A stretch of 62,880 nt of DNA, counting the filler, from Octopus bimaculoides (Eukaryota): the NCBI RefSeq assembly GCF_001194135.2. It is 8 parts of 7 records of this genome, joined end to end, with 100 filler letters (N's around TTAATTAATTAA, not from the genome) between each part and the next. Parts side by side here need not be neighbours in the genome. Positions count along the whole stretch, not along the records: positions 1 to 16,572 come from NC_069009.1; 7 more parts are not named here. One strand, written 5' to 3'. Below are positions 1-17,691 of the stretch, piece by piece. The notes under the pieces were generated by a model. It was not told the DNA's origin and did not search any database. It saw only the letters and a list, made by a program, of their open reading frames with translations. The translations under genes were made by a program, and so were the position numbers. Within the stretch, counting starts at the first letter, position 1. Every line of letters starts with the position of its first letter.

Positions 1-250
1 GGCGAACCCTGCTGTACTCTTCCACCACAACTTTCTCTCAATCTTACTTCCTGTTTCTGTTGTACCTGTATTTCAAAGGGCCAGCCTTGTCACACTGTGT
101 CACGCTGAATCTCCCCGAGAACTGCATTAAGGGTACACGTGTCTGTGGAATGCTCAGCCACATGCACGTTAATTTCACGAGCAGGCTGTTCCGTTGATCG
201 GATCAACTGGAACCCTCGACGTCGTAAGCGAAGGAGTGCCAACAACAACA
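1..250 (+). mobile_element. SINE family A, central and 3' part (head lies outside the window)
   Basis: 1-90 closely matches the reverse complement of 1880-1977, which belongs to a copy with a tRNA-like head; ends in an (AAC)n tail. Confidence 0.75.
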
Positions 251-690
251 TACATGCAAATATAGTCAGTAAAATTACCATTATCAACATTTTCTTCCAC
301 CATTTCTCTTCCTCTCTTTCTCTCTCTCACTCACTATCTTTTGTTGTCCTTCACTGTATGTGCGTTTCTCTTTGGTAATACTATAAGTATATATAGTTAA
401 CTCCTATATATAGTCACTCCTTATGTGTTTGTATGTATTTGATTAAATGTATCCTGTAGGGTGTATAATATAGCGCCTTTGTGCGTGTGTGTGTGTGTGT
501 GTTGTAGTGTGTATGTATACGTTAGCCACTAGAAGACGTTTTTTCTTTTGGGTTTTTTTTTCACACTTATATACAAATAAGTGTGGAAAGAAACAAGACA
601 AAAACGTTTTGTCGTGGCTAACATATACATACACATTACAACATACACACACGTACAAAGGCGCAATATTATACACACTACAGCATATAT

Positions 691-1400
691 CTAATCAAAT
701 ACACACAAACACATAAGGAGTGACACCCACTTCTCTCTGGTTTGTTGACAAGTGCTGTGTGTGGCTGAGAGCATATCTGAGAGGGCCATTATGAACAGTA
801 GTGGTCTCAAAACAGTGCCTTGCGGAACACCGCTCACTATTTGCGTGTCATTGGAGGTGGCCCCATTGGCTACTACCACCTGACTTCTATCCTTCAGAAA
901 GTCGTGCAGCCATTCTCCCAATTTTCCAATTATGCCGAGATCACGCAGTTTGTGACATATCATTCTATGATCGACTTTCTCAAAGGCCTTTGCAAAGTCG
1001 AGATATATCACTTCCACGTTTGAGTGGTTGAGCAGTTGTTTCAACACCCAGTCATAATGTTGTAAGAGCTGAGTCAGGCAGCTTCTTCCTGGTCGGAAAC
1101 CATATTGGGTGTCAGTCAGCAAGTCATTTGTCTTTAAGGAAGGTGATTAATTTTCTTCTGTCTTTGCTCCATGACCTTGCTGATGTGCGAACTCAGAGAG
1201 ATAGCTCTGTAGATTTTGGCCTCTGCTCTGCTACCTCCCTTATGAATAGGGCATATTTTACCCTCCTTCAGTTTGCTTGGGAGTTTGCTAGTTGCAAGGA
1301 AGCTCTGAAAGAGGGACTGTAGTGTTCTTGCTTTTGTGAAGGATTGCTGGGAATCCATCATGGCCAGTAACTGAGTTTGGGTTCATTTCATCTATAGCCC
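691..1400 (-). mobile_element. CR1/L2-group LINE reverse transcriptase fragment (frameshifted)
   Basis: ORFs 691..1122 and 1134..1361 give ICPIHKGG..YRAISLSSHISKVME, QYGFRPGRSC, YLDFAKAFEKVDH and SGVPQGTVLRPLLF; same family as 10400-14190. Confidence 0.9.
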
Positions 1401-1584
1401 TTATTAAATCGTCTTCCTATATATTGATATAATCAATCATCCCTGCCTTTGTTTTTATATCTGCAGCGGTAAAAAAAAAGTCAGCCAGGGGTGGAGCGAA
1501 AATACTTTTGAACTGCTCATTTAGTATTTCACTTATCCTCATTGGGTTTCCTGTAAGTGAACCATCTTTATATGTTTATGTATA

Positions 1585-1700
<116 letters not shown>

Positions 1701-1876
1701 GTGTATCCATGCAATATTAAGGATTCAAATGAATCAAGTACTTAAATGATAAGCACCAGGTCGGGTCAAATTAACTTGTAAAACAGCACCTTTAATTGAA
1801 TTTATATAATGGGTACTGAAGTACATCCAGTGCAATGTTCAGGTTGTGCATTCAGAGAATTTAACCCTTTTGAGTA

Positions 1877-2112
1877 CCTTGAGTGACAAAGCTGACCCTT
1901 TGAATTACAGGCACAACAGAAACAGGAAGTAAGAGTGAGAGAAAGTTGTGGTGAAAGAGTACAGCAAGGTTCGCCACCATCCCCTGCCGGAGCCACGTGG
2001 AGCTTTAGGTGTTTTCGCTCAATAAACACTCACAACGCCCGGTATGGGAATCGAAACCGCGATCCTACGACCGCGAGTCCGCTGCCCGGACCACTGGGCC
2101 ATTGCACCTCCA
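1877..2112 (-). mobile_element. SINE family A, tRNA-like head plus central domain (3'-truncated)
   Basis: Reverse complement begins gtggaggtgcaatggcccagtggt...ggatcgcggtttcgattccc (Pol III A/B-box-like); central part matches 1-90. Confidence 0.8.
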
Positions 2113-3116
2113 CAATGAATACATTACATCAGAACTAAAACCTCACTTTCTTCGGGTGTTTCAAAGCAGTGTTTGATATGTTATCATCTGAAGAAATCGT
2201 TTTTGTTTTTTAGTACGCACAGAAGTAAACATATACATATGGTCAATTGTTCTGTTCTTATATTATACGCAATCATTCATATTTATGTATGCATGCGTAT
2301 GTCAACACATGTATAATTAAATTAACGTCCAACATAATTATTATGAAAGTTTTTGTAGGTTTTTCTACGCCAAAAGAATCCAAGCCGAATGGCACAGACG
2401 AAACATGAACGGAAATCTCAAGTTGATTTTACAGCTGAAATATTTGCAATTCTCTGGTTTTCTCTTCATAAAATTAGTTGACGACAGCAACAATAACAAC
2501 AGCATATCTTTATTCAGAAGAAGAAAGTGCAATCAGTGCATTTTTCAACAAATATGTTATTGTTGAATAGAAACATTATATTTCTAAATCTCTCAACGAG
2601 AGACATTCATTTACTACCTTAAAGTAAAGATTATTTGCCGACATAATGTGACAGTCCCGATTGGGGCAAATGTTACTGTTGTTTAGCCTCAGGAAACATC
2701 ATTTCCAGTTGGCTATACGACACACTATTTGTGTCCTTATAATTTTCGAACAGGAGAATTTAGCATCACCCCCTAGCACAAAGCAATATCAATGGACTGC
2801 AGTTTCTGGGCTATTTCTCTTCCTCGGCGCAGAATAACTGCTTGGCTGGGATGGTGCTGCTAAATCTCTGTTCGAAAATGTGTTATTGTTATTGCTTTGT
2901 TCTTGTATATTCAGAGAGGTGACATCTTGAAAAAGGTCATTCTTGCCCTCCAGTGCACCTGGGGTCAATATAATAACAGTCATTATTTTAAAAACTGACA
3001 GAAATACCTAATACTTTGCTAGTGTGTTTAAAATAATGAAGTAAACATCATCCCCTTGAAACTTTAATATTTTCACAAAGCTAAATATTTTCCTTATATT
3101 TCTTTATAGATTTAAT

Positions 3117-6100
3117 ATGAAATGCCAAACAAGAAATACTTCAAGAAAACTTACAACTACGAAAAAAGCTTTCTGGAACTCAACAACAAAAAGGGATGAA
3201 GAAGGAATGGACAATAAAAGACGTAAAGGAGAATATAAAAGGAGGGAAATAATTGCAAGACATGATGTTATGGACAAACGCGTATATTATACAAGACGTA
3301 AAGCATATCAAAGCAAAATTAATTTCTTGATAAATTCTAGGGTAAAAATATGTACTTTTTTAAAGTATGTAGGCTTGAATGAAAATGATTTTCTGAAAGA
3401 TTTTAAACAGAGAATAGAAATTGTAACGAAAGATCTTTACAATCAAGAATTCATTAATTTTGAAAAACTTGAATTGTTCCTGGAACACTATTTAGAGAGA
3501 AATATTTTACAAGAAAAACACAAGACCATTCCGGCATCAGAAACAACCGCAAAATTTCGGCCTCTTTGTGCAGTTGTGACCAGAGAAGCAAAGATCGAGG
3601 AATCTCGTGAAGAATTTGCCAACAACACAATATCCAATAGCGTCATCATACAAAACGGGATAATAACATATTCCCGCCATTGTATGACAATATGTTGTGC
3701 GACAACAGACGGTGACACAAATGTTGTTCATTGTCCATCTTCTGTCACCGATTTAACCAGAATCAGTCATGACACAGTTCTGGCCACCCTCCCTTTCCGC
3801 AAATTAATTCTTATTATCAACCCTTTCAGTTTTAAAATCACAAGGATTCAGTTAGGATTATACTTGGTTTCTTTTTTAGAACATTCTACGTTTATAGGTG
3901 TAGAAATGTTCGGTAGGACCATATACGTCATTGATTGGGAAAATAATAGAATTAAATTTGAATTCATTACCAAAGAAACACCTACAGATATTGCTGTAGG
4001 TACACAGAATAAACTCTTATTATCATTTTCCAGTATTAACAGGGTTACCTGTTATAATCTGGACGGCCAGCAGTTATTTGAGGTAGACACCAATTCACTT
4101 GACTTCCCAATCCGTATCACAGTATACCAAAACCATTTTTATGTTCTCCAGGGATATATTGTTTATCGAATTTCAGGTAGAGGTGCTGTGACAACGAGAG
4201 AAATTGGAAGGAAATGCCGCCATATTTCTGTTGGCAAAGATTATATTTTTGTAACCGATTATTTTGATGTCCTTCATATCATTAGAACAAATGAATACTT
4301 TTGGCCTAGGATGTCATATAACCACCTGTTGCGTACCCCAAATTTGAACAACCATATTTGTATTGAAGATTGCTACAACATTACAAATATTCTACCTATG
4401 TCTACATCTTCTATATTAATAACTTACAGGAATAAAAAAGCCATGTTAGTCACTGATACTGGGGAAATAACTAGCCAAAATAATTTAACTTTCCTTGAGC
4501 TTCCTTCTATCTTTTGCAGAATAAACTCTAGCAGATTTCTAGTCTTTTATCATGAAATAAAAGGGCTTCAGTATATCACATGCCCTGAATTAAACGAAGG
4601 CCCTTTAATAAAGGTCCAAACTGATTATATTAGAATATGTCATATTGTATCAAATAAGTGTTTAGCTCTGACCACCAGTGAAAGCATAAACGAGGTCCAT
4701 ATCCTACTGATCAAGGAGGACAAAGTTATTATCATAGAAAAAATGTCTCTAGAACATTCTAATGTCACCATTGCTGCAACACCAATCAATTTTGTAATCG
4801 TAGACAGAAGGAAGAATAAATTGGTATTTTACTCAACATCTGGTGAAGAACTTTTTGAAAAATTCTTTCCATTCTATGGCTACCCTCATCACATCTATTC
4901 TGATAATATTTATTTTTATGTCTTTTTCAAGAGACTGTCTATTGTGATATGTTATGATATATATGGAAACATTAAATGGCAGTGGAAACTACCTTTCCCT
5001 GTTCACCCTCACATTGCTGTTTTCCAAGGAACTGTTTATCTACCGGACACTCAACTCAACAGGGTCCTTCTTTATAAGTATCATGATTGGCCTGGCTGTT
5101 GTTTACACACAAAAAATCCTTATATCAGAAATCTAAATATACAACTCAGAGAAGAGGAAAATGACAAAGTTGTCATTGCCGAAATATGTCAGCTGGCAAA
5201 TGGACAGTTGGTGGTGTCCGACATCAACCATGATTGCTTGTTATACATTTCTAATGAAGGAGACATTGTGTCCAGATTATCTCTGCCGTCTACAGCTACA
5301 GATATATGTCGATGGGATTCTCATCAAATAGGTGTCACATTACCCCTACAGAAACAATTAAGGGTCATTGGAAACCTATCAAAGACAGTTAGAAGTGTAT
5401 CATTAAGGCAGCCTTATGTACGGGTGTGTAAGATGGGTGAAGGTGAAATTGTTTGTTATTGTGATAAATCATCACATTTAGATATTCTAGTCATTAAAAA
5501 CTATAATCAAGTTGAAATAATTCACAGAATTAATATCCCTTTTTTTGTGAAATCATTATCAATAGAAAATGAAACACTAAAGCTATTAATTATTACTAGT
5601 AGAAAAGCTTTTCAGTATAACACAAGTATCGATGGTGGTGGTCATGGCAGTAATACTAGTTGTGGTAGAAGTATTAGTATGAAGATGGTCCCCAGTGTTT
5701 TAATGTCCCAAGTGAAACGTCCCCTCAATCTCTATGGAGGATCTATTGATAAAATATCTGTTTATCTGATAGACAACAGCCGTATGTTCGCTATAAACGA
5801 TCATAATTTGGTGGTTAATGATCTCGTTACAAATAATCAGCTTAATATTTATATCGACCTTGTTGATGTATTTTCCAGAAACATTTGTGCCAGTGAAATG
5901 TTGTCTTCTATGTCATATCTACAGGATCTGACAGTTTCTGATAAGGTTAGAAATATTCATATCCCTCAATGTTTGGAAGAGGACGGGTTTCCGAACACTA
6001 AATGTTGGGCTCTTATTGAAAATAACCTGATTGTGGAATATGACTCAAATACTTTAAACATTAGGTTATTCACATTTGATGGCCAACTTCAGGATTCTAT

Positions 6101-8468
6101 CAAATTTAATGTTGGTCACTTTATCAATATATGTCGATGGCAGTCAAACACATTGGTTATTACTGCTCGAAGTTCTGGTGATAATAATAAATATAAAATT
6201 TTAACATTAAAATTGGAATTTCCGATGTCATTTGTGATTTACCAGACAGAAAATAAATATGAATGCATTGCTTCTTTATCAAATAATCAATTGGTGTGCA
6301 GTAGAAGGGATGATGAATGCAGTTTCTATGTCATTGATATTGACGAAATACATTCGACCGTGAATGAAATAAAAAAAATAGATATACCTGAAACTTTATT
6401 ATTAAGAAAATGGCAATATGATGATAGAAATTATATTAAGAACATTTTTGATATTACAGTTACTGCTCGTGATATCATCATTACCTGCAATGAAAGATTC
6501 CTCATTTTCTTCAATAGTGATGGTCAATATTTACTTTCAAGTAGACACTATATGAAGTATTTTCGTTTTAGCAACAGGATGATGACAACCGATGACAATT
6601 ATTTGCTTATTAATGGTTGGTGGGATAAATATCCTGATCTTTCGGAATATGAAAGCATTGTGTGTTTGACACAGACAGGAGAATACAACAAAATATTTTT
6701 AAATGAAAGAATAGAGAAAGATGGAGTACATTTCTGTAGCATAAACTGTAAAGGACCAAGGTTTGTTGGACGCCGCATGTACAGAAATGAATTATATGTT
6801 GAAGGTTTGTATAAGCTTAATCGGGAAAGATACACTGTTTGTCGTTTACAAACAGACAAGTGTCCTGTTCAAGTAAAAGATATTGATATCTCTGATGAAG
6901 GAAAGACAGTTGTGTGTGAAAAAGCCAATAATGGAAATGTTAAAATATTTGATGAAGACGGGGAGCTGCTATGTCACAGAAATGTGGCAAGTTTAGTTGG
7001 TGGTGTGTGTTTTACGGGGGAAAGAAACATAATGGCCACAGTTCCCAAAAGAAAAGAAATATTTCAACTGAATGGAAAAGATTTGAAGAAATATAAAGTT
7101 TGGAAAAGTCGAGTGCCTTATGGTATAATTTGGAGAATAGTGGGAAATATTTACTGTTGTGTATATATTAACTTGACTGAATTTCATTGCATAAAGATTG
7201 ATGGGGACCAACTGAACATTTTGGAATCTATGTCGCTATTCAATCTTGATTCTGGTATTCATTTCCCGTCTATGACATCTGAAATGAACAAAAGAATATT
7301 CAGTAATGAATTAATTACTAAATTGAAATGCAGTGGAGAAGGAGATGGAGGAAGAAGAAGAGGTAAATCAGGTGAAATAATTGGTAAAGGTACATTAAAG
7401 GTGAGATGTGGTAATTACATCGCAGAAAGCGTGTCTGGAATTGATGAGATATTAGTGAGGAGACTGCCACATAGAACAGCAGTGGCCTTTCTTTCCATTC
7501 CAACATTCGATGAACCTGTTAATTTTGACTATTGGGACATTAAAGACCGGAACAGTAAATTAATTAAGTTAGATGACAATGTCAGTGCGTTGATGTTTAG
7601 AGAAAGTGTCACATTAATCAGCACAACTACAGGTGACATACTTCAACATAAACGAATACCACAACAACCACAACAACAACCACCACTGGACATATGTCGA
7701 TGGACAGATGAATGTTTCATAGTCGTCTTTGCTAAAGAAATGATGGTCTTCAACAGAGATCTCTGTTGTTTAAAAACCATAAAAACTGAGAAATACTACA
7801 ACAGGATTTATAAATACAACGACAATCAACTTGTGTGTGGTGGTCATTATATTAGAGATATAAGTCCACATGAGAGAAACAAGAAATACGAAAAAAAATA
7901 CTATTTCTGGAAACCTTCCATCAGGCTCCTCGACCCCACTTACTTTGACTGCTATTATGTCGATGTAATTGATATCAATGATGGGACATGTAAATATGAA
8001 GTGTGTCAGGGGAAGACGGCGATAGATGAAAACTTAGATGGAGATGTGGTAGTATTTGATGTAGCAGTCACGTGTTATGGTGATGTTGTTGTTACGACTT
8101 GGGAAACTGAGGAGGAACAGTGGGGGAGATATAATGGCTATTTTGTCTGTTGGTACAGGGAACAGTTGCTGGTGAGGAGGATACAACTACAACCACCAGT
8201 TGATATAGATACTTATCATATTTTCAGACCTTGTCTCACCGTAATAGGTGAATATGTTTATATAACAGACATAAAAAACAATATTTACCAAATACCTGAA
8301 CAAATTGAACTGGAGAAATCTGAAGACATTGAAAAGTATTTACTCCTCAGAAATGTTGATAATGAAGTCTACCATGTTCTTGGTTTTGATATTTCAGATA
8401 CTTCTTTCATGACTTTTGGAATTATTCCAGGACGTCAATCATTGGCTTTTTTTCATTATGAAAAATAA
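3117..8468 (+). CDS. 1783-aa intronless ORF or giant terminal exon; basic N-terminus followed by about six tandem NHL-like beta-propeller units
   Basis: 5.35 kb without a stop in AT-rich DNA. Recurring blade motifs: ICQLANGQLVVSD, DICRWDSHQIGVTLP, NICRWQSNTLVIT, DICRWTDECFIVV, IDISDEGKTVVCE, FDVAVTCYGDVVVT. A strong acceptor (tttccttatatttctttatAG, ending 3109) lies just upstream, so the true N-terminus may be in upstream exons. Confidence 0.9.
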   Translation: MKCQTRNTSRKLTTTKKAFWNSTTKRDEEGMDNKRRKGEYKRREIIARHDVMDKRVYYTRRKAYQSKINFLINSRVKICTFLKYVGLNENDFLKDFKQRIEIVTKDLYNQEFINFEKLELFLEHYLERNILQEKHKTIPASETTAKFRPLCAVVTREAKIEESREEFANNTISNSVIIQNGIITYSRHCMTICCATTDGDTNVVHCPSSVTDLTRISHDTVLATLPFRKLILIINPFSFKITRIQLGLYLVSFLEHSTFIGVEMFGRTIYVIDWENNRIKFEFITKETPTDIAVGTQNKLLLSFSSINRVTCYNLDGQQLFEVDTNSLDFPIRITVYQNHFYVLQGYIVYRISGRGAVTTREIGRKCRHISVGKDYIFVTDYFDVLHIIRTNEYFWPRMSYNHLLRTPNLNNHICIEDCYNITNILPMSTSSILITYRNKKAMLVTDTGEITSQNNLTFLELPSIFCRINSSRFLVFYHEIKGLQYITCPELNEGPLIKVQTDYIRICHIVSNKCLALTTSESINEVHILLIKEDKVIIIEKMSLEHSNVTIAATPINFVIVDRRKNKLVFYSTSGEELFEKFFPFYGYPHHIYSDNIYFYVFFKRLSIVICYDIYGNIKWQWKLPFPVHPHIAVFQGTVYLPDTQLNRVLLYKYHDWPGCCLHTKNPYIRNLNIQLREEENDKVVIAEICQLANGQLVVSDINHDCLLYISNEGDIVSRLSLPSTATDICRWDSHQIGVTLPLQKQLRVIGNLSKTVRSVSLRQPYVRVCKMGEGEIVCYCDKSSHLDILVIKNYNQVEIIHRINIPFFVKSLSIENETLKLLIITSRKAFQYNTSIDGGGHGSNTSCGRSISMKMVPSVLMSQVKRPLNLYGGSIDKISVYLIDNSRMFAINDHNLVVNDLVTNNQLNIYIDLVDVFSRNICASEMLSSMSYLQDLTVSDKVRNIHIPQCLEEDGFPNTKCWALIENNLIVEYDSNTLNIRLFTFDGQLQDSIKFNVGHFINICRWQSNTLVITARSSGDNNKYKILTLKLEFPMSFVIYQTENKYECIASLSNNQLVCSRRDDECSFYVIDIDEIHSTVNEIKKIDIPETLLLRKWQYDDRNYIKNIFDITVTARDIIITCNERFLIFFNSDGQYLLSSRHYMKYFRFSNRMMTTDDNYLLINGWWDKYPDLSEYESIVCLTQTGEYNKIFLNERIEKDGVHFCSINCKGPRFVGRRMYRNELYVEGLYKLNRERYTVCRLQTDKCPVQVKDIDISDEGKTVVCEKANNGNVKIFDEDGELLCHRNVASLVGGVCFTGERNIMATVPKRKEIFQLNGKDLKKYKVWKSRVPYGIIWRIVGNIYCCVYINLTEFHCIKIDGDQLNILESMSLFNLDSGIHFPSMTSEMNKRIFSNELITKLKCSGEGDGGRRRGKSGEIIGKGTLKVRCGNYIAESVSGIDEILVRRLPHRTAVAFLSIPTFDEPVNFDYWDIKDRNSKLIKLDDNVSALMFRESVTLISTTTGDILQHKRIPQQPQQQPPLDICRWTDECFIVVFAKEMMVFNRDLCCLKTIKTEKYYNRIYKYNDNQLVCGGHYIRDISPHERNKKYEKKYYFWKPSIRLLDPTYFDCYYVDVIDINDGTCKYEVCQGKTAIDENLDGDVVVFDVAVTCYGDVVVTTWETEEEQWGRYNGYFVCWYREQLLVRRIQLQPPVDIDTYHIFRPCLTVIGEYVYITDIKNNIYQIPEQIELEKSEDIEKYLLLRNVDNEVYHVLGFDISDTSFMTFGIIPGRQSLAFFHYEK

Positions 8469-8469
8469 A
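8464..8469 (+). promoter_or_regulatory. Candidate polyadenylation signal AATAAA overlapping the stop codon of the 1783-aa ORF
   Basis: gaaAAATAAat, with TAA at 8466-8468. Confidence 0.3.
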
Positions 8470-8591
8470 TATCTTGATAAATAGCAAACTCTGTTGGTGT
8501 TGTTACTGGGTTCTCCTGGAAATCGAACTTGTATTACTTGCATTGCATTCTAAACACTACTGATTATTGTTGTAGCTATTTTCAACACTCA

Positions 8592-8631
<40 letters not shown>

Positions 8632-8681
8632 NNNNNNNNNNNNNNNNNNNNNNNNNNNNNNNNNNNNNNNNNNNNNNNNNN

Positions 8682-8715
<34 letters not shown>

Positions 8716-9136
8716 TCTCTCTTTTTACTCTTTTACTTGTTTCAGTCATTTGACTGTGGCCATGCTGGAGCACCGCCTTTAATCGAGCAAATCGACCCCA
8801 GGACTTATTCTTTGTAAGTCTAGTACTTATTCTATTGGTCCCTTTTGCCGAACCGCTAAGTTACGGGGACGTAAACACAATAGCATCGGTTGTCAAGCGA
8901 TGTTGTGGAGACAAACACAGACACACAAACATATACACACACAAACATACATATATATATATATACATATATACGACAGGCTTCTTTCAGTTTCCGTCTA
9001 CCAAATTCACTCACAAGGCTTTGGTCGGCTCAAGGCTATAGTAGAAGACACTTACCCAAGGTGCCACGCAGTGGGAATGAACCCGGAACCATGTGGTTGG
9101 TAAGCAAACTACTTACCACACAGCTACTCCTGCGCC
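8716..9136 (-). mobile_element. SINE family B (tRNA-derived head, CORE-like segment, internal TA/CA tract, (GTAAAAGA)n tail), full length
   Basis: Closely similar to copies at 23369, 38772 and 57970; head gagtagctgtgtggtaag...ggttccgggttcattccc. Confidence 0.9.
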
Positions 9137-9289
9137 TATATATATACATATATGCACATATATGACAGAAGTAGATAGACAACCCATAAAACGTCGTTTT
9201 ATATTTATTACTTTAACTTGAAATGGCTTATATATCTTATCAGTTGACATTTTATGTTTCAGGTTCTATATGTGACTATTTAATCATAC

Positions 9290-9800
9290 CATGTGCAAAA
9301 GAAGCCTCGGAGCAGTCTGAATTTCAAAGGGGCCGTATTGTGGGTCATTCTGAAGGTGAACATAACGTAAGATCGCAGAAAACCTTGGGGTCCCGCTTCC
9401 TACAGTTAATGGAAGGATTGTGCCACTCACCAGACAGGAGAAGGAGTCCACATCAGATCAACCAGGGCCTTCTGACAGGACCCTTCTCTTTGTGAAGAGA
9501 TGTGTGGAAGATATTCCTCGCTGTAAGGTCTCAGAATATGTTGATATCAGTCCCAGGACAGCTGTCAGATATCTCCATAAACTTGGTTACTATGGCTGAA
9601 CAGCAAGAAGGAAGCCACTTTTTCGACCAGAGAACATCAGATGGTGTAGAAGCCACTAGCATTTTGGGACGCTGTCATATTCTCTGATGAGTGCAGATTT
9701 GCTACGTTTCCTGACAGTGTTCGAGTGTGGGTCTGGAAACTCTGTGATCAAGTATTTGATGTGAAAAGATTGCAACCAACAATGAAACATGGCAGCTATT
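9290..9800 (+). mobile_element. Tc1-like transposase relic
   Basis: Frameshifted SEFQRGRIVGHSEG, a paired-like HTH region, DECRF-like segment at 9687-9705 and LQPTMKHG. Confidence 0.8.
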
Positions 9801-9839
9801 CGTTACAAAACGAATTCGTTACAAAACCGCTTTCTTTTT

Positions 9840-10390
9840 ACTATCGTTTGTTTTTCACGTTATCTTTTTTTTACTGCTGTCCTCTCCATCTTTTGTTTTT
9901 CTCTTTCATTCATATCCTCCTTACCTGCTCCTCCTCTCTCTCTTTCCTACCTTCTCCTTCTTCTCTCTTCTTTCCTTCCTCTTTACATCTTTTTCCTGGT
10001 TCTCTCTCTCTCTCTTTGTCTCTCTCTACATCTACCTCTCTCCTTCCCTGTTTCATACATCTCACTTTTTCTCTCCTCTCCCACCCTTTCATATCTTCCT
10101 CCTTTTCTCACTTCTCCTTCCCTTTCTTTGTCTCATACTACATCTACGTCTCCCCTCTCATCTTACCCCCTCATTTTCCCTCCTCTTTCCACTCCGTCTC
10201 TCCCTTTCCCACACATCCTTCATTCTCTCCTCTCTCTCTCTCTTTCTTTTCCTCTCCTCTCCCTTCTTCTGTCTCGCTATCGCTCCATACCCACCTTCTC
10301 TTTATTCATATCACCCTCTATCCTTCCCTCTCTCTCTGTCTTTCTTCCGCTCTACCTCCCTCTGTCTCTCACTTCCTCACTATCCTCCCG
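9840..10390. repeat. Pyrimidine-rich (CT) low-complexity tract
   Basis: About 550 bp almost entirely C/T on the + strand; explains spurious ORFs 9725, 9789 and 9910. Confidence 0.9.
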
Positions 10391-10399
10391 TCTGGGCTT

Positions 10400-13300
10400 A
10401 GAAAACGAAGATGGCGCCAAAGTGAGAGAGCAAAGAATTGAATCTTCTGTTGCGAGCATGGGTAATTGCTAGCGGCGATCCGCCAAACAGCACCATCACT
10501 GCTGCACTGAAGAACAATGGCTTCTATAAGACCAGTGAACAGATAGAGCGGAAGAGAAATGAATTCACCCGATCTTATGCCCTTATTAGATCACACATTG
10601 ACACTCTTGATGTCATCATGGAAAACTACTGTGGCAAAGCTGATAAGAATAGGGAAAACGATGCACAAGCTAGAAGTCTCTTTGACCCAGTAGTGCCTCC
10701 AAAGAATAGATCTCCCACCCCTGTGAACAACCAGGCTGATAAGGATATGGAAGCTATGGTAGAAACAATCAGAAGACCCTCTGTGTCAGTGGTCCTACAA
10801 AGGAATGGGGTCCTCACCCCGTTGGACAACCAGAAGAATGAAAGCGCTACCACCAGAAAAGGAAGGAAAGAACAGGAGCACGAAACATAAAGAAGGGGAG
10901 AAAAAGGAAAAGAAAAAATTAAATAACTGAAACCGAAACCCCAAACCACCAAACAAAAACAAATATGGTGACTCCAATAGAATCCGAAACCATAGAGGAG
11001 AGAAGAAATTTGGAGTGAACTCAAGGACCTGCAAGGCAAATGTTGGCACAGGGAAGACGGTATAAACTATCGGTTTATTCACCCGAGATCCCACCAAAAC
11101 TACAGGAGCCTTAAAGAGAATAACTTCCCTGACGAAAGCACCGATCGCCTCCAAAGAAAAATTATACAAATGCAGTGCGCTCTTCAGAGGCTATGCGCAA
11201 GCCAACCGTTGATCAAGGGTCATTTTTGTGCATGGCACATAAGATTGTGCAACAGCGGACCTGGCTACATTAAGCTCAAACAAAGAACCTTGCCCACCAC
11301 TGTGCAAGACCACCACAATCAACAGATACGGGATGGCCTCTCTTAACACCTGCACAGTCGTCACGCCAATATTTTTATTAAATATTGGGGCCTGTTGTAT
11401 CACAACAACAAAAGCAGAATTTTTCTCCTGAGAGACCTTGCTGCATGCAATCAAGCCCTATGCATAGCACTCGTGGAAACTCACCTCAGCCCTGATATAG
11501 AGGATGCAGAAGTACACGTACCAAAATATGTCATACTGCGAACAGACAGAAGGGAAAGGAGCCATGGTGGAGTTGCTGCATACATCCGTGAAGACCTCAC
11601 ACCCAAGGTTTTACTGTGATACTCAAATCCAGTATGACACACACTAATTGTATACATAAGACAATACGATATAGTCGTATGCAAACCACATAGGCAAGTT
11701 TATATTAATCCTCATGATACTGTAACACCATGCGAGCGTATTTCTGATGATTGATTTCAACTCCCCCAGTGTCAAATGGCCTGAAAGCCTCATGTTCTCA
11801 GGCATGACTTGTTGCAAACAAACACAGGTGGAGTCCTTGCTCAACCTCATCAATGCCCTATTCATGCATGTTGTACTCAGACCACCTAGGGCGAATAACA
11901 TTTTGGATCTCTGCTTCACAAACAATATGAACATCGTTCATGATGTGAAAATGACGCCAACATTAGTTTCGAATCACAAAATAATAGAGCTGTCTATATA
12001 TGGGGCAAAAGTAGCCAGAGATATACAGCCTAAAAGAAACATCCAAAATCTCTCTGTTCTGTACTTCCACAAAGCAGACTAGAAATCTATCCAAAACTAG
12101 ATCCTCAGACAGGACTGGCCGAAATGTCTCTCCACACCAGACATTTGCATGAAACTGGAATATTTCATGTCTGTTATGCAAGCCATATGCCAGAAAGATG
12201 TCCCAGAGTACAAGGCTAAAATAAAAACGAACAAGATTCCAAGGGAGAGGAAGATCCTCATGAGACGACGGACAAAGGTTGCAAAACGCTTCAACCAACA
12301 TTCCAAAAGTAGCGAAAGGTCCTGCCTAAGAACAACACTGATGGAGATTGAAAAAAGCCTGCAACAACCCTATGTGAGGGAGAGAGTGGACAAAGAAGCC
12401 TGGTTATAAAAATATTAAATAAAAACCAAAGGCCTTCTTTCATTATGCCAAAGAAATAGCCTCAGTGTGCTGCAAAATACGACTCCTCTTCCAGAAGGAT
12501 GGCTCCCTCACAGACAGTCCAACCAGGATCAGTGAAGAACTGAATGGCCAGTTCAAAAGTACCTTTACCCCGCTGGAACACAGACAAGTGAACGAACCGA
12601 TGGCTTTCTTTGCCGCCTCACCTCTAACCGAGGCAGTTACGCCTCTTCAGATTCTCTTCCAGAGTTTTCTTGCAAATGGCAGGCTGCCAAGCGAACTGAA
12701 AGAAGGAATAATATGCTTAATCCATTAAGGGGTAAGCAGAGAAGATGCCAAAGCTATTGGCCTATCTCTCTGACTACACACATCAACAAAGTCGTGGAAC
12801 GGATAGTCAGAGGGAAACTAATCGCATTCCTTGAAGAAAACAACTTTCTGGGTGATACCCGACCAGGTAGGAGTTGCCTGCCAAGCTCTTACATCACTAT
12901 GACTTGGTGTTAAGGCAGTTACTTAACAACTCAAATGTGGAGGTAATAAACCTTGACTTTGAAAAAGCTTTTCATAAAGCGGTATGATATGCTTCAAGCT
13001 ACGTGATCTTGGCATAGCTGGAAAATTTGGAGTGTGGTTACATGACTTTCTGAAGATAGAGTTCAGGCAGTATTGGCCAATGGCACCACCTCAAACAAAA
13101 CAAAAGTAGTGAGCAGTGTTCCATAGGGCGCTATCTTGGGACTACTGCTTTTCATAGTGGCCCTTTCAAATATGTCCTCAGCTGCCTGGATAGCTACGCA
13201 GACAATACGAAAGTCTTGCAGAAAATACAAAACTCCAGCGATGTTACACACCTGCAGCAGGAGTTGGACTCAATTTACAGATGGGCTGAGGAAAATAATA

Positions 13301-14190
13301 TGCAATTTAATGCTGAAAAATTCCATGCCCTTTGCTACTAGTGTCCAAAACTGAATATAAAACTTACAGGGTGTAGTGGTCCACAGAGGATTACAATCTC
13401 AGAGCCTAAATCAATGAGGGACCAGGATCTCGATATGAGTGATACATACCTCTTTCCAAGTGCACATTATAAGGATGGCGACAAAGTGCAGACGACTGGA
13501 TGGATGGATCCTGAGAACGTTCAAGACCAAAGAGAAGGAAACTATGATGGTCTTCTGGAGGACATTCCTCTTCAGCCGCCTGGACTACTGCTCCCAGCTA
13601 TGGTCACCCAACAGTGTGAAATTAACAGCGGACCTTCAAGCAAACAAGCGAAACTTCACAAAGAAGATTGTGTCGTTGCAACAGCTCAGCTACTGGAAAA
13701 GGTTGAAAAAGCTAAGACTCTACTCCCTAGAATGAAGGTGGGAGAGGTATGCAGAAATATACATCTGGAAGATCCTGGAATGAACTGTGCCAAATTTTGG
13801 CATTCAAAGATATACCAATGCCAGAACGGGTCGCCACTGCACACTGCCAAAGATCCCAGTAATGCCATTGCGCTTCAGGTACAATTGCTGCAACAGCCTG
13901 GGTTTCAGGGACCGACAGCTTTTTAATATTTTCCCAAAGAACCTGAGGGGCCTACACAAAGTCGATGTAGGTGTTTTCAAATCAAAACTGGACCTCTTCC
14001 TGTCGAGAGTCCCACATGAACCTACCTCGCCAGCAAGATGTGCAAATGAGGGTAGCGATATCAAACTCCCTTATTCACCAAATGCCACATGTTAAAGGAG
14101 GCCCTAAATAATGACAGTTAAGCCAAACGGCGGTGCGCAACATGGCCGTAGCTCTGAGCTGGAACTACAAAAATCATATGCATAAATATA
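10400..14190 (+). mobile_element. Near-full-length degenerate CR1/L2-group LINE (ORF1 relic, APE endonuclease, RT, 3' end)
   Basis: APE motifs IALVETHL, RRERSHGGVAAYIRE, NILDLCFTNN, SNHKII; RT motifs YWPISLTTHINKVVERIV, LDFEKAF, LDYCSQLWSP, LKKLRLYSLE; many stops and frameshifts. Confidence 0.9.
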
Positions 14191-14219
14191 TACATGTATA
14201 TATACACATATATATATAT

Positions 14220-14343
<124 letters not shown>

Positions 14344-14470
14344 GCACTGCGAAATGTCTCCTACATGTGCGACCCTATATATATATATATATATGTATGT
14401 ATATATGTGTGTGTGTGTGTGTATGTATATATATATATATGTGTGTGTATATGTATATACACACACATGC

Positions 14471-14706
14471 GCTGCGTGTTGTGTTCTTGAGCAAGACATT
14501 TTATTTGACGTTGCTCCAGTTAACTCAGCTGTAGAAATGAGTTGCCTTTGTCTTTCCCTAGAATAACATCGGTGGCGTGGAGAGGGGAGGCTGGTATGCA
14601 TGGGCGACTGCTTGGTCTTCCATAAACAACCTTGGCCGGACTTGTGCCTCAGAGGGTAACTTTCTAGGTGCAATCCCATGGTGTCATTCGTGACCGAAGG
14701 GAGTCT
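14471..14706 (+). mobile_element. SINE family C, 5'-truncated
   Basis: Matches 26886-27152 (gctgcgtgttgtgttcttgagcaagaca...gaccgaagg). Confidence 0.85.
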
Positions 14707-14724
14707 CCGACTATATATATATAA

Positions 14725-14757
<33 letters not shown>

Positions 14758-14982
14758 NNNNNNNNNNNNNNNNNNNNNNNNNNNNNNNNNNNNNNNNNNN
14801 NNNNNNNNNNNNNNNNNNNNNNNNNNNNNNNNNNNNNNNNNNNNNNNNNNNNNNNNNNNNNNNNNNNNNNNNNNNNNNNNNNNNNNNNNNNNNNNNNNNN
14901 NNNNNNNNNNNNNNNNNNNNNNNNNNNNNNNNNNNNNNNNNNNNNNNNNNNNNNNNNNNNNNNNNNNNNNNNNNNNNNNNNN

Positions 14983-15015
<33 letters not shown>

Positions 15016-15050
15016 GAGATAAAAAGTGTTGGTGGCATACGAGTGGGTAT

Positions 15051-16282
15051 GTACTTATAAAAAGAAGTCTAAAAACGCCACTATATAAGATAAATTTTAA
15101 TTTTCTCAGAGATATTTGTAATAGTAGAAGCAGTTAATTGGTTGTAGGATTTGCACCATAGTATTAGACACAAACACACCCGACACCCCGACATACACGT
15201 CTCCAGGAACTCAGAACTACACGCATATATAGGAATTATCCACAACCCCTAATAGACAATACAATCCAACGATTACTTAAATTAAAGATAGAAGACCGGA
15301 GACAACCAAAACCAAACGAGTATGAAAAATTAAAAACCCTACCCTACATCTCTACACACAACCCACTTAACAACGAGGCCTTCAACACCATACTCCAAAG
15401 CACAGCTCTGCTCAAGCGAGACCCAAAGATGAACCAAATCATCCAAACGTACACCATCATAAAAAGTAAACGGCAGCCAAAATCCTTAAAGAAGATTCTA
15501 ACACAGGCTAAACTGCACCCAATAACAACCACAAAACCAACAGTTAAAAAGTGTGGAAGACCCAACTGCGGGATCTGTATCATCTTAGTAGAAAGTTCGG
15601 AATACACATTAGAACAAGGCCATCATTTCACTATCAGAACAAACTTCACCTGTGCATCGGAAAACTTAATTTATGTGTTAACATGCGCAGGATGCAATAG
15701 GCAATACATAGGCCATACAAAAAGCAGCTTACGAAAAAGGATGGCAGTACATAAATCCCAAATTAGGAATCCTGAATACAGGAAAATACCTGTCAGCGGC
15801 CACATGGACAGATGTGCATCGAATAAAACTCCAAAGTTTACAGCTTTCCCGCTTTACCAATTCAATAACAATGCAACATTCACTCAACGTCATAACAAAG
15901 AGCTTCGTTTCATTAGAAAATTCGGACCAAGTTTAAACACCCTGGGCCAGGAACATTAAAACCGTATATTGGTTATCCAAAAAGGAAAAAAACAGAAAAA
16001 AGTATTCTACGACTCCAACCACCACCACCGCCACGATAACTACTACTACTCCAAGCAACGGTTCGTGCTACTACTACAACTACTACGACCAACAGTCTCT
16101 GCTACAGCTGTTATTACGGCCAACGTTCACTCCTACTACTACTACTACTACTACTGGTGCTGCTGCGCTGCTTCCTCTACTACTACAGCCAATTAACTAC
16201 TGCTACTATTACAAATATCTCTGAGAAAATTAAAATTTATCTTATATAGTGGCATTTTCAAACTTCTTTTTTATAAATATAC
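15051..16282 (+). mobile_element. 5'-truncated Penelope-like element: GIY-YIG endonuclease ORF 15429-15959 flanked by inverted copies of its 3' terminus
   Basis: ORF has KCGRPNCGIC, FTCASENLIYVLTCAGCNRQYIGHT, RKRMAVH and VSGH; 15051-15147 is the reverse complement of 16183-16282. Confidence 0.88.
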
Positions 16283-16572
16283 TAGCAGAAATGCCCGGCT
16301 TTGCCCGGGTTAAAGAGAATAATGAAATCTAAAAACGCCGTCAAGACTACGCAACCCTCAACTGTTAGTAGCTATGATACCATATTTCTACATTAATAAC
16401 TCTCCAATCCATGCCAGCATGGAACATAGACATTAAGTGGAATGCCAGTCTCTCATCTAGGAAGGCCTTGAAATCAATGTTACCAACTGGGGACTATGTG
16501 TGTCGCAGTGATAATAAAAAGACTCAAAGGAGGTCTGCAACGAAATAATTTTACTCAACACTTTGCAAGTGA
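16281..16572 (+). mobile_element. Possible non-autonomous Helitron/Helentron-like element, 5' end
   Basis: Begins ACTAGCAGAAATGCCCGGCTTTGCCCGGG, a CTAG plus subterminal hairpin typical of such elements; 3' end lost in a gap. Confidence 0.45.
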
Positions 16573-16616
16573 NNNNNNNNNNNNNNNNNNNNNNNNNNNN
16601 NNNNNNNNNNNNNNNN

Positions 16617-16628
16617 TTAATTAATTAA
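16617..16628. other. Assembly spacer: 44 N + TTAATTAATTAA + 44 N (also at 21320, 46729, 54146, 58471, 59845, 61547)
   Basis: The same 100-bp cassette occurs seven times and puts stops in all six frames. Confidence 0.95.
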
Positions 16629-16919
16629 NNNNNNNNNNNNNNNNNNNNNNNNNNNNNNNNNNNNNNNNNNNNGTGTGTATGTATGTATGTGTGTATGTAT
16701 ATGTACTATACCCCAAGGGATCAAATTGCAGATGTACAGATGGATCAAAATTTCTTTTGTAATATGAGAATGGTTAAGGAGGGTCAACGGGAAGAGAAGC
16801 TCCAAGATCAGGGAGGGCCCACTGCCAACAAAAAAAAAAAAAACAGAAAAATAACAAAAAAGCCCGAAAAAAAAATCTGCAGCAAACATTTCCATAGTTA
16901 TGCTAATCAAGGGAATGTT

Positions 16920-17113
16920 TTATATTTTGAAAGCCATAAACGATTGAAAGAATCGTATGAAACATATTTGATCCTTGTTTACAAGAGAGGAAGAGGAATT
17001 AGTTACTCCATCAACCATTCTCTGGCATCGCAGATGTGTTGCGACATTATCTTTTGCATTCTGAATGCTGTAAGTCCTATTGTATAAAAACCATTTCGCC
17101 GGTTTTCTACAGC
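16920..17113 (-). CDS. ITIH-like gene, candidate terminal exon (SCRKPAKWFLYNR...QICFIRFFQSFMAFKI*)
   Basis: Acceptor ttattttttaAG; phase 1 matches the donor at 21426; 63 codons then TAA. Homology not recognised with certainty. Confidence 0.45.
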
Positions 17114-17234
17114 CTTAAAAAATAACGTTTAAATTTGGATAATGAAATGTCGAAATCTTTTTTCAATGTGATACCACATACATATGAAAGAATTATTATG
17201 TATGGCTCGTTGCTTGTATACATACATACATACA

Positions 17235-17265
<31 letters not shown>

Positions 17266-17643
17266 GAACATACGTACATATGAACGTACATACACACAGA
17301 CATAGATATAAATAAATATACAGATAGATATACATATATAGATATAGATGTATATATGTATACATGTTTATAATATTTATATATTATTTATATTATTATA
17401 TGATCGAACGCCACGCATCCTTTTCCAAGTAAGTTTTATCTTATATATATATGTATATATACATACACACACATGTGCATATATACATATAAGTGTATAT
17501 ATGTATATATATAAATTCTCAGCTTAAATGTAACATTAAATTATTCATTTATATAATATTCTTAAATGTACATTACTCAATATATGCTTGAGAATAAGCA
17601 ATATGAATGAATATTACAATGTTTTAGATGTAAGTATTGTGTG

Positions 17644-17691
<48 letters not shown>

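Follow-up and report, generated by a model that had tools for sequence, protein, structure and literature searches.

A six-propeller NHL-type protein of Octopus bimaculoides from an amplified octopod family, a candidate multivalent binding platform

The DNA analysed here is a stretch of 62,880 nucleotides from Octopus bimaculoides (assembly GCF_001194135.2, hereafter the window), in which a single coding exon on the plus strand, at 3117..8468, encodes a protein of 1783 amino acids (aa) that, by profile comparison, holds six mutually homologous units of about 230-310 aa each, related to the NHL beta-propeller. This protein belongs to a family found in octopods, and we propose that it probably acts as a cytosolic, multivalent binding platform with a recognition specific to each paralog. 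The architecture and its homology to NHL domains are documented below, and we further infer a transcribed gene whose product, located in the cytosol, would bind ligands at several sites.

According to this proposal, the array would have been built from an NHL propeller, such as TRIM-NHL proteins have at their C-terminus, through repeated duplication, with loss of the RING and B-box. The duplication would have occurred in the octopod lineage before the split between Octopus and Argonauta, and the whole gene would then have been amplified into tandem arrays subject to birth and death. The short, basic, helical and fast-evolving N-terminus, followed by six NHL-type propellers on short disordered linkers, would constitute the multivalent platform. 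In this platform the conserved propellers 2, 3 and 5 could bind common partners or hold the architecture, and the hypervariable face of propeller 4 formed by the B-C and D-A loops, probably with part of propeller 6, could give each paralog its own ligand, either RNA or protein. In NHL propellers, ligands are canonically bound by this B-C/D-A loop face.

An intact gene encoded by a single coding exon

The single stop-free reading frame of the original prediction was recovered in full, from ATG to stop codon, as a complete coding sequence of 1783 codons plus stop. Its product has a mass of 208 kDa, a pI of 7.7 and 57 cysteines. Given the base composition of the frame itself (A 0.35, T 0.31, G 0.19, C 0.16), the probability that 1783 codons contain no stop is about 1e-63, and the longest open reading frames (ORFs) in the other five frames over the same interval reach 46-89 codons. 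A protein identical residue for residue is encoded on O. bimaculoides CM046629.1 (GCA_001194135.2), at about 11.49-11.51 Mb of this 11.99-Mb record and so near one of its ends. The window gene is an intact O. bimaculoides gene. All the motifs quoted in the original prediction were found in the window protein at the residues that it gave:

Unit 1: QNGIITY at aa 179 and VLATLP at aa 221
Unit 2: NILPMSTSSILIT at aa 424
Unit 3: ICQLANGQLVVSD at aa 690, DICRW at aa 729 and IGVTLP at aa 738
Unit 4: CWALIENNLIVEYD at aa 963 and ICRW at aa 1005
Unit 5: IDISDEGKTVVCE at aa 1256 and GVCFTGERNIMATVP at aa 1296
Unit 6: LIKLDDNV at aa 1482, DICRW at aa 1525 and FDVAVT at aa 1647

Homology between the six units

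Self-BLASTP of the window protein gave no internal high-scoring segment pair at E<10. The family alignment was cut at the unit borders of the original prediction and the segments were compared as profiles by hhalign. With an alignment of 13 sequences, the matches between units were weak yet full-length and in register. A stronger comparison was obtained with an alignment of 20 sequences to which divergent subfamilies had been added, leading to the following probabilities:

Units 1 and 2: 88%
Units 2 and 3: 93%
Units 2 and 4: 95%
Units 3 and 4: 87%
Units 3 and 6: 95.5%
Units 4 and 5: 91.5%
Units 4 and 6: 95%

In the control, the N-terminal 150 aa reached at most 0.3% against every unit. Since the profile matches between units are full-length and in register, the six units are homologous to one another and the borders proposed for them were right. 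Within units, the blades resembled one another only weakly, in alignments shifted by about 41, 80 and 127 aa.

Relationship with NHL domains

No Pfam domain was above threshold on the window protein or on 13 paralogs. The recurring weak match, present in nine of the 13 members, was to DUF4934 (best E=0.0077). Other weak matches concerned WDR90 and ANAPC4_WD40, the WD40 matches being stray ones on one to three paralogs and none on the window protein. Because the Pfam NHL model fails on this protein, every member is annotated as 'uncharacterized'. Searches of PDB sequences returned nothing significant, whether the query was the single protein or the family profile; among the sub-threshold matches of the family profile, five of 13 were NHL chains of TRIM71 or TRIM3.

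The link to NHL proteins was provided by an hmmsearch in which a profile of aa 681-1783, built from five family members, was compared without word filter with 1.84 billion cluster representatives. This search found 34 proteins in all at E<=1e-3, 28 of them family members or fragments and six of them outsiders. The best outsider (P0062, CAE1315789.1, E=2.8e-8) comes from the cuttlefish Acanthosepion pharaonis and has RING, B-box and NHL domains above the Pfam threshold; its nearest relatives are RING/B-box/filamin/NHL proteins, which is the classical TRIM-NHL architecture. Five of the six outsiders were counted as NHL-repeat proteins: P0062, with P0066 and P0067 (Pfam NHL above cut-off), P0064 (B-box and near-threshold NHL) and P0063 (without Pfam domain), two of these five (P0062 and P0064) carrying TRIM-type zinc fingers. 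The sixth, P0065, is a WD40/PQQ protein with a weak match. By hhalign, the NHL domain of P0062 aligned over its full length (aa 395-622) with unit 4 (aa 939-1197). The probability was 94-97% and the identity 24% in about 270 columns, and no unit is closer to outside NHL domains than unit 4. For units 1, 3, 5 and 6 the direct matches were:

Unit 3 and the NHL proteins P0064, P0066 and P0063: 95%
Unit 5 and the NHL protein P0063: 92%
Unit 6 and the NHL domain of P0062: 83%
Unit 1 and the NHL protein P0066: 70%

In the joint alignment, the family units and P0062 have a motif series in common, consisting of the first strand, G-x-hhVsD, dG, ICxW and hhVTxP. These outsiders and whole-domain alignments, up to 97%, support the NHL-like character that had been predicted, despite the Pfam failure. 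Neither RING nor B-box was found by Pfam in the window protein, in the 13 paralogs or in the divergent members P0041 and P0044.

The sub-threshold Pfam NHL scores, the weak matches to DUF4934, WDR90 and ANAPC4_WD40, the WD40/PQQ outsider and the top rank of WD40 and YWTD arrays in the structure comparisons described below could together indicate a propeller of another class (WD40, YWTD/LDLR-B, SGL or TolB-like), whose likeness to NHL would be a convergence of generic blade motifs. We hold this to be very unlikely, as five of the six outsiders are of NHL type, three of them above the Pfam cut-off and one just under it, and as alignments of units with NHL domains run end to end at 92-97% with the motif series in common. 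Furthermore, a unit length of 230-310 aa with a period of about 41 aa fits six blades, there is no YWTD motif, and no Pfam match to Ldl_recept_b or EGF was found in the window protein or the 13 paralogs.

Predicted fold of the units

Two AlphaFold2 models were computed from an alignment of 36 paralogs, one for aa 1-1000 and one for aa 901-1783. Both are all-beta beyond aa 174, with short regular strands and with units parted by disordered linkers. The numbers of strands counted by DSSP in units 1 to 6 were 23, 23, 17, 26, 14 and 24, respectively, a propeller of six four-stranded blades having 24. The units and their main features, with local confidence (predicted local distance difference test, pLDDT) where it is informative, are as follows:

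3636..4283, plus strand: propeller 1, aa 174-389, 23 modelled strands
4380..5078, plus strand: propeller 2, aa 422-654, 23 modelled strands, internal period of about 41 aa
5184..5966, plus strand: propeller 3, aa 690-950, most conserved unit, low-confidence second half with a Gly-rich insert
5979..6806, plus strand: propeller 4, aa 955-1230, 25-26 modelled strands, best confidence (pLDDT about 60-88)
6873..7493, plus strand: propeller 5, aa 1253-1459, short and atypical, 14 modelled strands
7239..7397, plus strand: disordered Gly/Arg-rich insert of 54 aa in unit 5 (containing GEGDGGRRRGKSGE), aa 1375-1427, pLDDT 26-37
7557..8462, plus strand: propeller 6, aa 1481-1782, 24 modelled strands, long inserts, the C-terminal half being variable and rich in indels among paralogs

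Foldseek comparison of the two half-models with the PDB gave 1253 and 598 matches at E<=1e-3, and all of the best 50 listed for each half are beta-propeller proteins. The top ranks are occupied by multi-propeller chains, such as IFT-A subunits, LRP2/4/6, DDB1, EMC1, UTPs of the small-subunit (SSU) processome and axonemal proteins, with E-values down to 5e-18. The TM-scores are low (0.11-0.24), as expected for a multi-domain model of arbitrary inter-domain geometry that is superposed as a whole. A search of a viral structure library matched generic WD40 and RCC1 propellers alone.

The models, with about 23-26 strands per well-modelled unit, and the Foldseek matches support the predicted beta-propeller fold class and leave the propeller subclass undecided. 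Judged from the strand counts, the well-modelled units would have about six blades, and unit 5 may have fewer. Concerning the predicted number of about six units, five are clear; the remaining one, unit 5, measures only about 230 aa, with 14 strands and the 54-aa disordered insert, and could be incomplete. The protein is fairly described as having six NHL-type units, of which five are convincing as full propellers.

Upstream region, N-terminus and predicted location in the cell

The region preceding the first propeller comprises the following features:

2994..3116, plus strand: conserved upstream block with a polypyrimidine tract and an AG acceptor TTTCTTTATAG at 3099-3109, the acceptor lying 7 nt before the ATG
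3117..3230, plus strand: basic, hydrophilic, disordered N-terminus with a KRRK (aa 34) resembling a nuclear localization signal, aa 1-38, pLDDT <35
3231..3506, plus strand: fast-evolving helical region with four modelled helices, aa 39-130, 27-29% identity between paralogs

About 120 nt upstream of the window ATG are 78-81% identical to the equivalent position in the paralog loci L003 and L004. The 3' splice acceptor is kept in loci L002, L004 and L005 and conserved in paralogs from three species, and the O. vulgaris model of P0002 splices a leader exon, 17.5 kb upstream, onto this exact acceptor. Since a conserved acceptor lies so close to the ATG, an intron in the 5' untranslated region (UTR) is likely, and 2994..3116 probably represents the end of this intron followed by a short 5'UTR. 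The coding sequence is a single exon in all five loci examined (window, L002, L003, L004 and L005), so that the predicted absence of introns holds for the coding sequence, to which the term 'one exon' has to be restricted. As paralog L004 has an in-frame TAG stop between acceptor and ATG and the RefSeq models begin at this ATG, the leader exon most probably has no coding role, and a hidden exon encoding a RING or a signal peptide is not expected. This argument is drawn from the paralogs, the window's own frame being open from the ATG back past the acceptor to the nearest in-frame stop at 3057.

The N-terminal 150 aa have a pI of 9.9 and contain, in addition to KRRK, the basic clusters KRR (aa 41) and RRK (aa 60). 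The helical region (aa 39-130) showed no detectable homology to anything searched, and its derivation from a TRIM coiled coil is unsupported, the hhalign probability with the coiled-coil region of P0062 being 0.8%. In agreement with what had been predicted, neither a signal peptide (the N-terminus is hydrophilic and basic, and the first 30 residues average -1.6) nor a transmembrane segment (the 19-residue Kyte-Doolittle mean does not exceed 1.53, and the highest-scoring windows correspond to beta strands) was detected in the window protein. Together with the scattered cysteines, which follow no EGF-like or disulphide-module pattern, these properties suggest that the protein should stay inside the cell.

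The frame left open in the window between the acceptor (3109) and the ATG, and the additional Foldseek matches to the ectodomains of LRP2, LRP4 and LRP6, would be compatible with a secreted or membrane-anchored adhesion or receptor protein of LRP or teneurin type, its signal peptide being encoded in an unannotated upstream exon. This is extremely improbable given the in-frame stop of L004, the start of the RefSeq models, the conservation of the initiator methionine and of the residues following it across paralogs, the lack of a transmembrane segment and of cysteine modules, and the fact that the closest relatives are RING/B-box proteins of cytosolic type.

Distribution and history of the family

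Word-indexed searches of 5.8e9 proteins matched Octopus paralogs alone. Taking these together with the exhaustive search of the 1.84 billion representatives, full-length relatives occur solely in O. vulgaris, O. sinensis, O. bimaculoides and Argonauta hians, the protein of the latter sharing 38% identity in a collinear alignment of about 1700 columns. The cuttlefish proteome that is the source of P0062, and that is present in the database, yielded no six-propeller protein and a single-propeller TRIM-NHL relative only. From this absence and from the presence in both Octopus and Argonauta, the array appears to date from the octopod lineage prior to the split of these two genera. The family had been predicted to be expanded in cephalopods; it is indeed expanded, but is restricted to octopods (Octopus, Argonauta) rather than cephalopod-wide.

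Divergent relatives are located on other chromosomes (P0044, P0039 and P0037, with 30%, 46% and 51% identity, respectively). The clusters of P0044 and P0039 each contain one protein from O. vulgaris, O. sinensis and O. bimaculoides, and these lineages therefore look old and stable. The main clade, 59-71% identical, is amplified, with at least 22 of 35 matches on one 29-Mb O. vulgaris chromosome. One 43-kb stretch of this chromosome harbours two apparently intact tandem copies and a frameshifted copy on the opposite strand. The latter (locus L002 on OX597841.1, 3903-9340, minus strand) is broken over at least four frames, stands head-to-head with the P0002 gene and is annotated as separate ORFs (411, 306 and 1090 aa); either it is a pseudogene or the assembly is in error.

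Some gene models (among P0004, P0015, P0056 and P0054) fuse family members to C2H2 zinc fingers or DUF4371, probably because the annotation continued into neighbouring genes. The names carried by some fragments, 'zinc finger protein 431-like' or 'Sema domain-containing', were probably assigned to pieces of propeller automatically.

Lineage-specific expansions, such as those of protocadherins, C2H2 zinc fingers and G-protein-coupled receptors, are a known feature of octopus genomes. The six-propeller family is a further expansion of this kind, missed by standard domain annotation, in which its members are uncharacterized proteins without Pfam domain. In the literature, no paper naming the six LOC identifiers searched and none describing a multi-NHL octopus family was found, and the database searches likewise upheld the statement that no named protein has this architecture. 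As far as these searches show, six NHL-type propellers in a chain without any other recognisable domain are not a described architecture.

Selection and the variable face of propeller 4

Ratios of nonsynonymous to synonymous substitution (dN/dS) were calculated by the Nei-Gojobori method among five genes (window, P0008, P0032, P0012 and P0002). The overall ratio was 0.46-0.49, for dS of 0.38-0.83, with values of 0.31-0.64 per propeller and of 0.74-1.0 in the N-terminal 150 aa. The family genes are constrained, under purifying but relaxed selection, and are nonetheless fast-evolving. Within the same gene pair, dS varies two- to three-fold among units (0.23-0.63); between the window gene and P0008 (L003), for example, it is 0.23 in unit 3 and 0.63 in unit 4. 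This unevenness is a hint of gene conversion, and it suggests a mosaic history or gene conversion among paralogs.

The strands of a propeller form one continuous antiparallel meander, and successive loops therefore alternate between its two faces. Loops were located with the strand positions of the AlphaFold2 models and their variability was measured as column entropy in the 36 paralogs. In propeller 4 the loop entropies strictly alternate (1.40, 0.17, 1.99, 0.58, 1.62, 0.00, 1.87, 0.27, 1.28, 0.25, 2.11, 0.64 etc.), the mean being 1.70 on one face versus 0.58 on the other (Mann-Whitney p=8e-5). On the variable face, dN is 2.5- to 5-fold higher in 10 of 10 gene pairs, with dN/dS of 0.42-1.06 versus 0.16-0.46 on the other face. 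The strands of propeller 4, placed via the Pfam NHL motif in P0062, are A 961-966, B 971-976, C 981-986 and D 991-996, and on this register the variable loops are B-C and D-A. With the usual propeller convention, this alignment points to the 'top' face as the variable one, and the top face of NHL propellers in TRIM-NHL proteins binds RNA or protein. The asymmetry was not significant in units 1, 2, 3, 5 and 6 (p 0.12-0.73); unit 6 shows a trend, its strand parity being uncertain and possibly broken by merged long strands. The hypervariability of one face of propeller 4 adds support for a role in recognition, and its opposition to a conserved face leads to a testable hypothesis of paralog-specific ligand recognition.

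These data also bear on whether the protein might be a fixed scaffold of housekeeping type, that is, a rigid six-propeller platform for one complex, comparable to DDB1, IFT-A or EML, in which paralog differences would be neutral drift. The top Foldseek matches (DDB1, EMC1, IFT-A, SSU-processome UTPs and axonemal proteins), the good conservation of units 2, 3 and 5 and dN/dS below 1 almost everywhere are in agreement with such a scaffold, which we nevertheless consider unlikely. Housekeeping scaffolds are usually single-copy and widely conserved, whereas this family has dozens of copies, is found in octopods only and includes some pseudogenised members. The Foldseek matches in question rank first because they are long and multi-domain, at the low TM-scores given above, and a variation of propeller 4 restricted to one face is not predicted by neutral drift.

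Several observations weigh against the proposal of an NHL-derived platform with paralog-specific recognition. Pfam NHL (PF01436) has no match on the window protein even at E<10; it matches one of the 13 paralogs at E=3.4, and the best score in the family, that of the divergent P0044, is 18.5 bits for a cut-off of 20. Unit 2 is tied to outside NHL domains through units 3, 4 and 6, its direct hhalign probability being at most 16%. The confidence of the models is moderate to low (mean pLDDT of 50 and 61 for the first and second half, respectively), the models of unit 5 and of the latter part of unit 3 (aa 802-950, pLDDT <50) are poor and incomplete, and the blade counts were derived from the DSSP strings of two half-protein models. 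Since dN/dS on the variable face mostly stays below 1, relaxed constraint is as good an explanation of this face as adaptive diversification. Lastly, the cluster members include no transcript-derived sequence, all coming from genome annotation, and this absence from read-assembly sources is no evidence of missing transcription.

A more specific version of the paralog-specific platform is conceivable, albeit doubtful: the proteins could be octopod-specific intracellular recognition receptors that would, for instance, sense or restrict RNA or proteins of viral or transposon origin, with one ligand per paralog. The ligand would then tentatively be bound by the top face of propeller 4 and part of propeller 6, the conserved propellers coupling this recognition to a shared downstream partner. 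If true, this would be a diversification of the invertebrate immune type taking place on an NHL propeller array without the TRIM ligase module, in a group of animals about whose intracellular immunity and RNA biology little is understood.

Comparison with known systems

The propellers are homologous, via the cuttlefish protein P0062, to those of the TRIM-NHL proteins of class VII (TRIM2, TRIM3, TRIM32, TRIM71/LIN-41, Brat and Mei-P26). Both have the motif series hhVsD, dG, ICxW and hhVTxP in blades 1 and 2, both are of cytosolic type without signal peptide, and the ligand-binding top face of the TRIM-NHL proteins would, on the register deduced above, correspond to the varying face of octopus propeller 4. 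In contrast, the octopus protein lacks RING, B-box and filamin domains, hence an E3 ligase module, contains six propellers instead of one and belongs to a tandemly amplified family limited to octopods, and its N-terminal helical region has no detectable likeness to the TRIM coiled coil. The case shows NHL propellers freed from their TRIM ligase context and serially multiplied.

Several propellers on short linkers are also found in DDB1/CPSF160/SF3B3 (three WD40-like propellers), EML5/6 (six) and the WD subunits of IFT-A, which give the best Foldseek matches (E 1e-12 to 5e-18) and illustrate the use of such arrays as multivalent platforms. However, these scaffolds are seven-bladed, of WD40 type, single-copy and eukaryote-wide, without sequence homology to the octopus protein. 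The YWTD arrays of LRP2/megalin, LRP4 and LRP6 are likewise serial six-bladed propellers of about 260 aa (Foldseek E about 1e-15), but they are extracellular, with EGF/LA modules, signal peptide, transmembrane segment and YWTD motif, none of which is present in the octopus protein. By analogy only, the v-loops of the TRIM5alpha B30.2 domain and the leucine-rich repeats of NLR and VLR proteins combine lineage-specific tandem expansion by birth and death, raised dN/dS and a variability concentrated on one predicted binding surface. They have another fold, and the octopus protein is without an identified signalling or effector domain or demonstrated positive selection.

Surroundings of the gene

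The gene lies amid repeats and debris of mobile elements:

1-93 and 1883-1975: inverted repeats, 93-nt arms, 92% complementary, around the reverse-transcriptase fragment
59-241: dispersed repeat, two copies in the paralog locus L004
691-1119, minus strand: reverse-transcriptase fragment, 142-aa ORF, Pfam RVT_1 E=1.6e-14
1588-1704: (GT)59 microsatellite, between the arms 1-93 and 1883-1975
8632-8681 and 14758-14982: assembly gaps (runs of N)
8724-9163: dispersed repeat, at least seven partial copies of 68-90% identity on both strands of the 25-kb paralog locus L004
9725-10890, plus strand: ORFs of 150-238 aa, no Pfam match
11747-12079, plus strand: endonuclease fragment of long interspersed element (LINE) type, 111-aa ORF, Exo_endo_phos_2 E=8e-5, below cut-off
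15059-15147 and 16183-16271: inverted repeats, 89-nt arms, 93% complementary, around the GIY-YIG ORF
15429-15956, plus strand: GIY-YIG nuclease ORF, 176 aa, E=6e-6, above the Pfam cut-off

Upstream of the gene, the RVT_1 region with its inverted repeats has the appearance of a decayed retroelement, and a portion at 931-1244 is found again in the paralog locus L003. Downstream, the Exo_endo_phos_2 fragment suggests a decayed non-LTR (long terminal repeat) retrotransposon, and the GIY-YIG ORF is possibly a fragment of a Penelope-like element, its tblastn comparison with phage giving no match. The fragments of reverse transcriptase, endonuclease and GIY-YIG nuclease belong to separate flanking elements, none of which brackets the ORF as a unit.

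Such debris on both sides, an intronless coding sequence of 5.35 kb present in dozens of copies, the frameshifted copies, the models fused to DUF4371 or zinc fingers and the lack of transcript-derived database members could be explained by a selfish or transposon-associated multicopy ORF, or by a decaying family without organismal function, riding mobile DNA in repeat-rich chromosome ends. We judge this very improbable. The ORF contains no transposase, reverse-transcriptase or integrase domain and is bracketed by no terminal direct or inverted repeats, on which grounds a transposon protein was rejected. Paralog loci are similar over the ORF and over collinear upstream blocks that lie no more than about 900 bp from the ATG; at the stop codon the similarity ceases. 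At least some copies are in tandem, a dN/dS of about 0.47 with dS up to 1 indicates long-term constraint, and divergent subfamilies exist on other chromosomes, with their one protein per Octopus species.

The dispersed repeats at 8724-9163 and 59-241 are probably similar to short interspersed elements (SINEs) or miniature inverted-repeat transposable elements (MITEs). The ORFs in 9725-10890 are most likely spurious, this region being CT-rich and of low complexity (GC skew -0.42, AT skew -0.35), with the direct-repeat family D4 at 9931-10394. The assembly gap at 8632-8681 starts 164 nt past the stop codon, so that the 3'UTR is interrupted in the assembly, and the inverted repeats I3-I5, I8, I9 and I15 are artefacts produced by the gaps. 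The Rfam scan of the window detected no RNA families.

The P0008 copy (locus L003, bases 1-18809 of CM046605.1) lies inside the first 19 kb of a 127-Mb O. bimaculoides chromosome; with the window gene, two O. bimaculoides copies are at or near the ends of chromosome records, and a subtelomeric preference is possible. The coding sequence of the window gene is markedly richer in AT (GC 0.31-0.36) than its repeat-rich flanks (GC up to 0.42-0.46), and it has a positive GC skew, up to +0.32 around 6500-7500.

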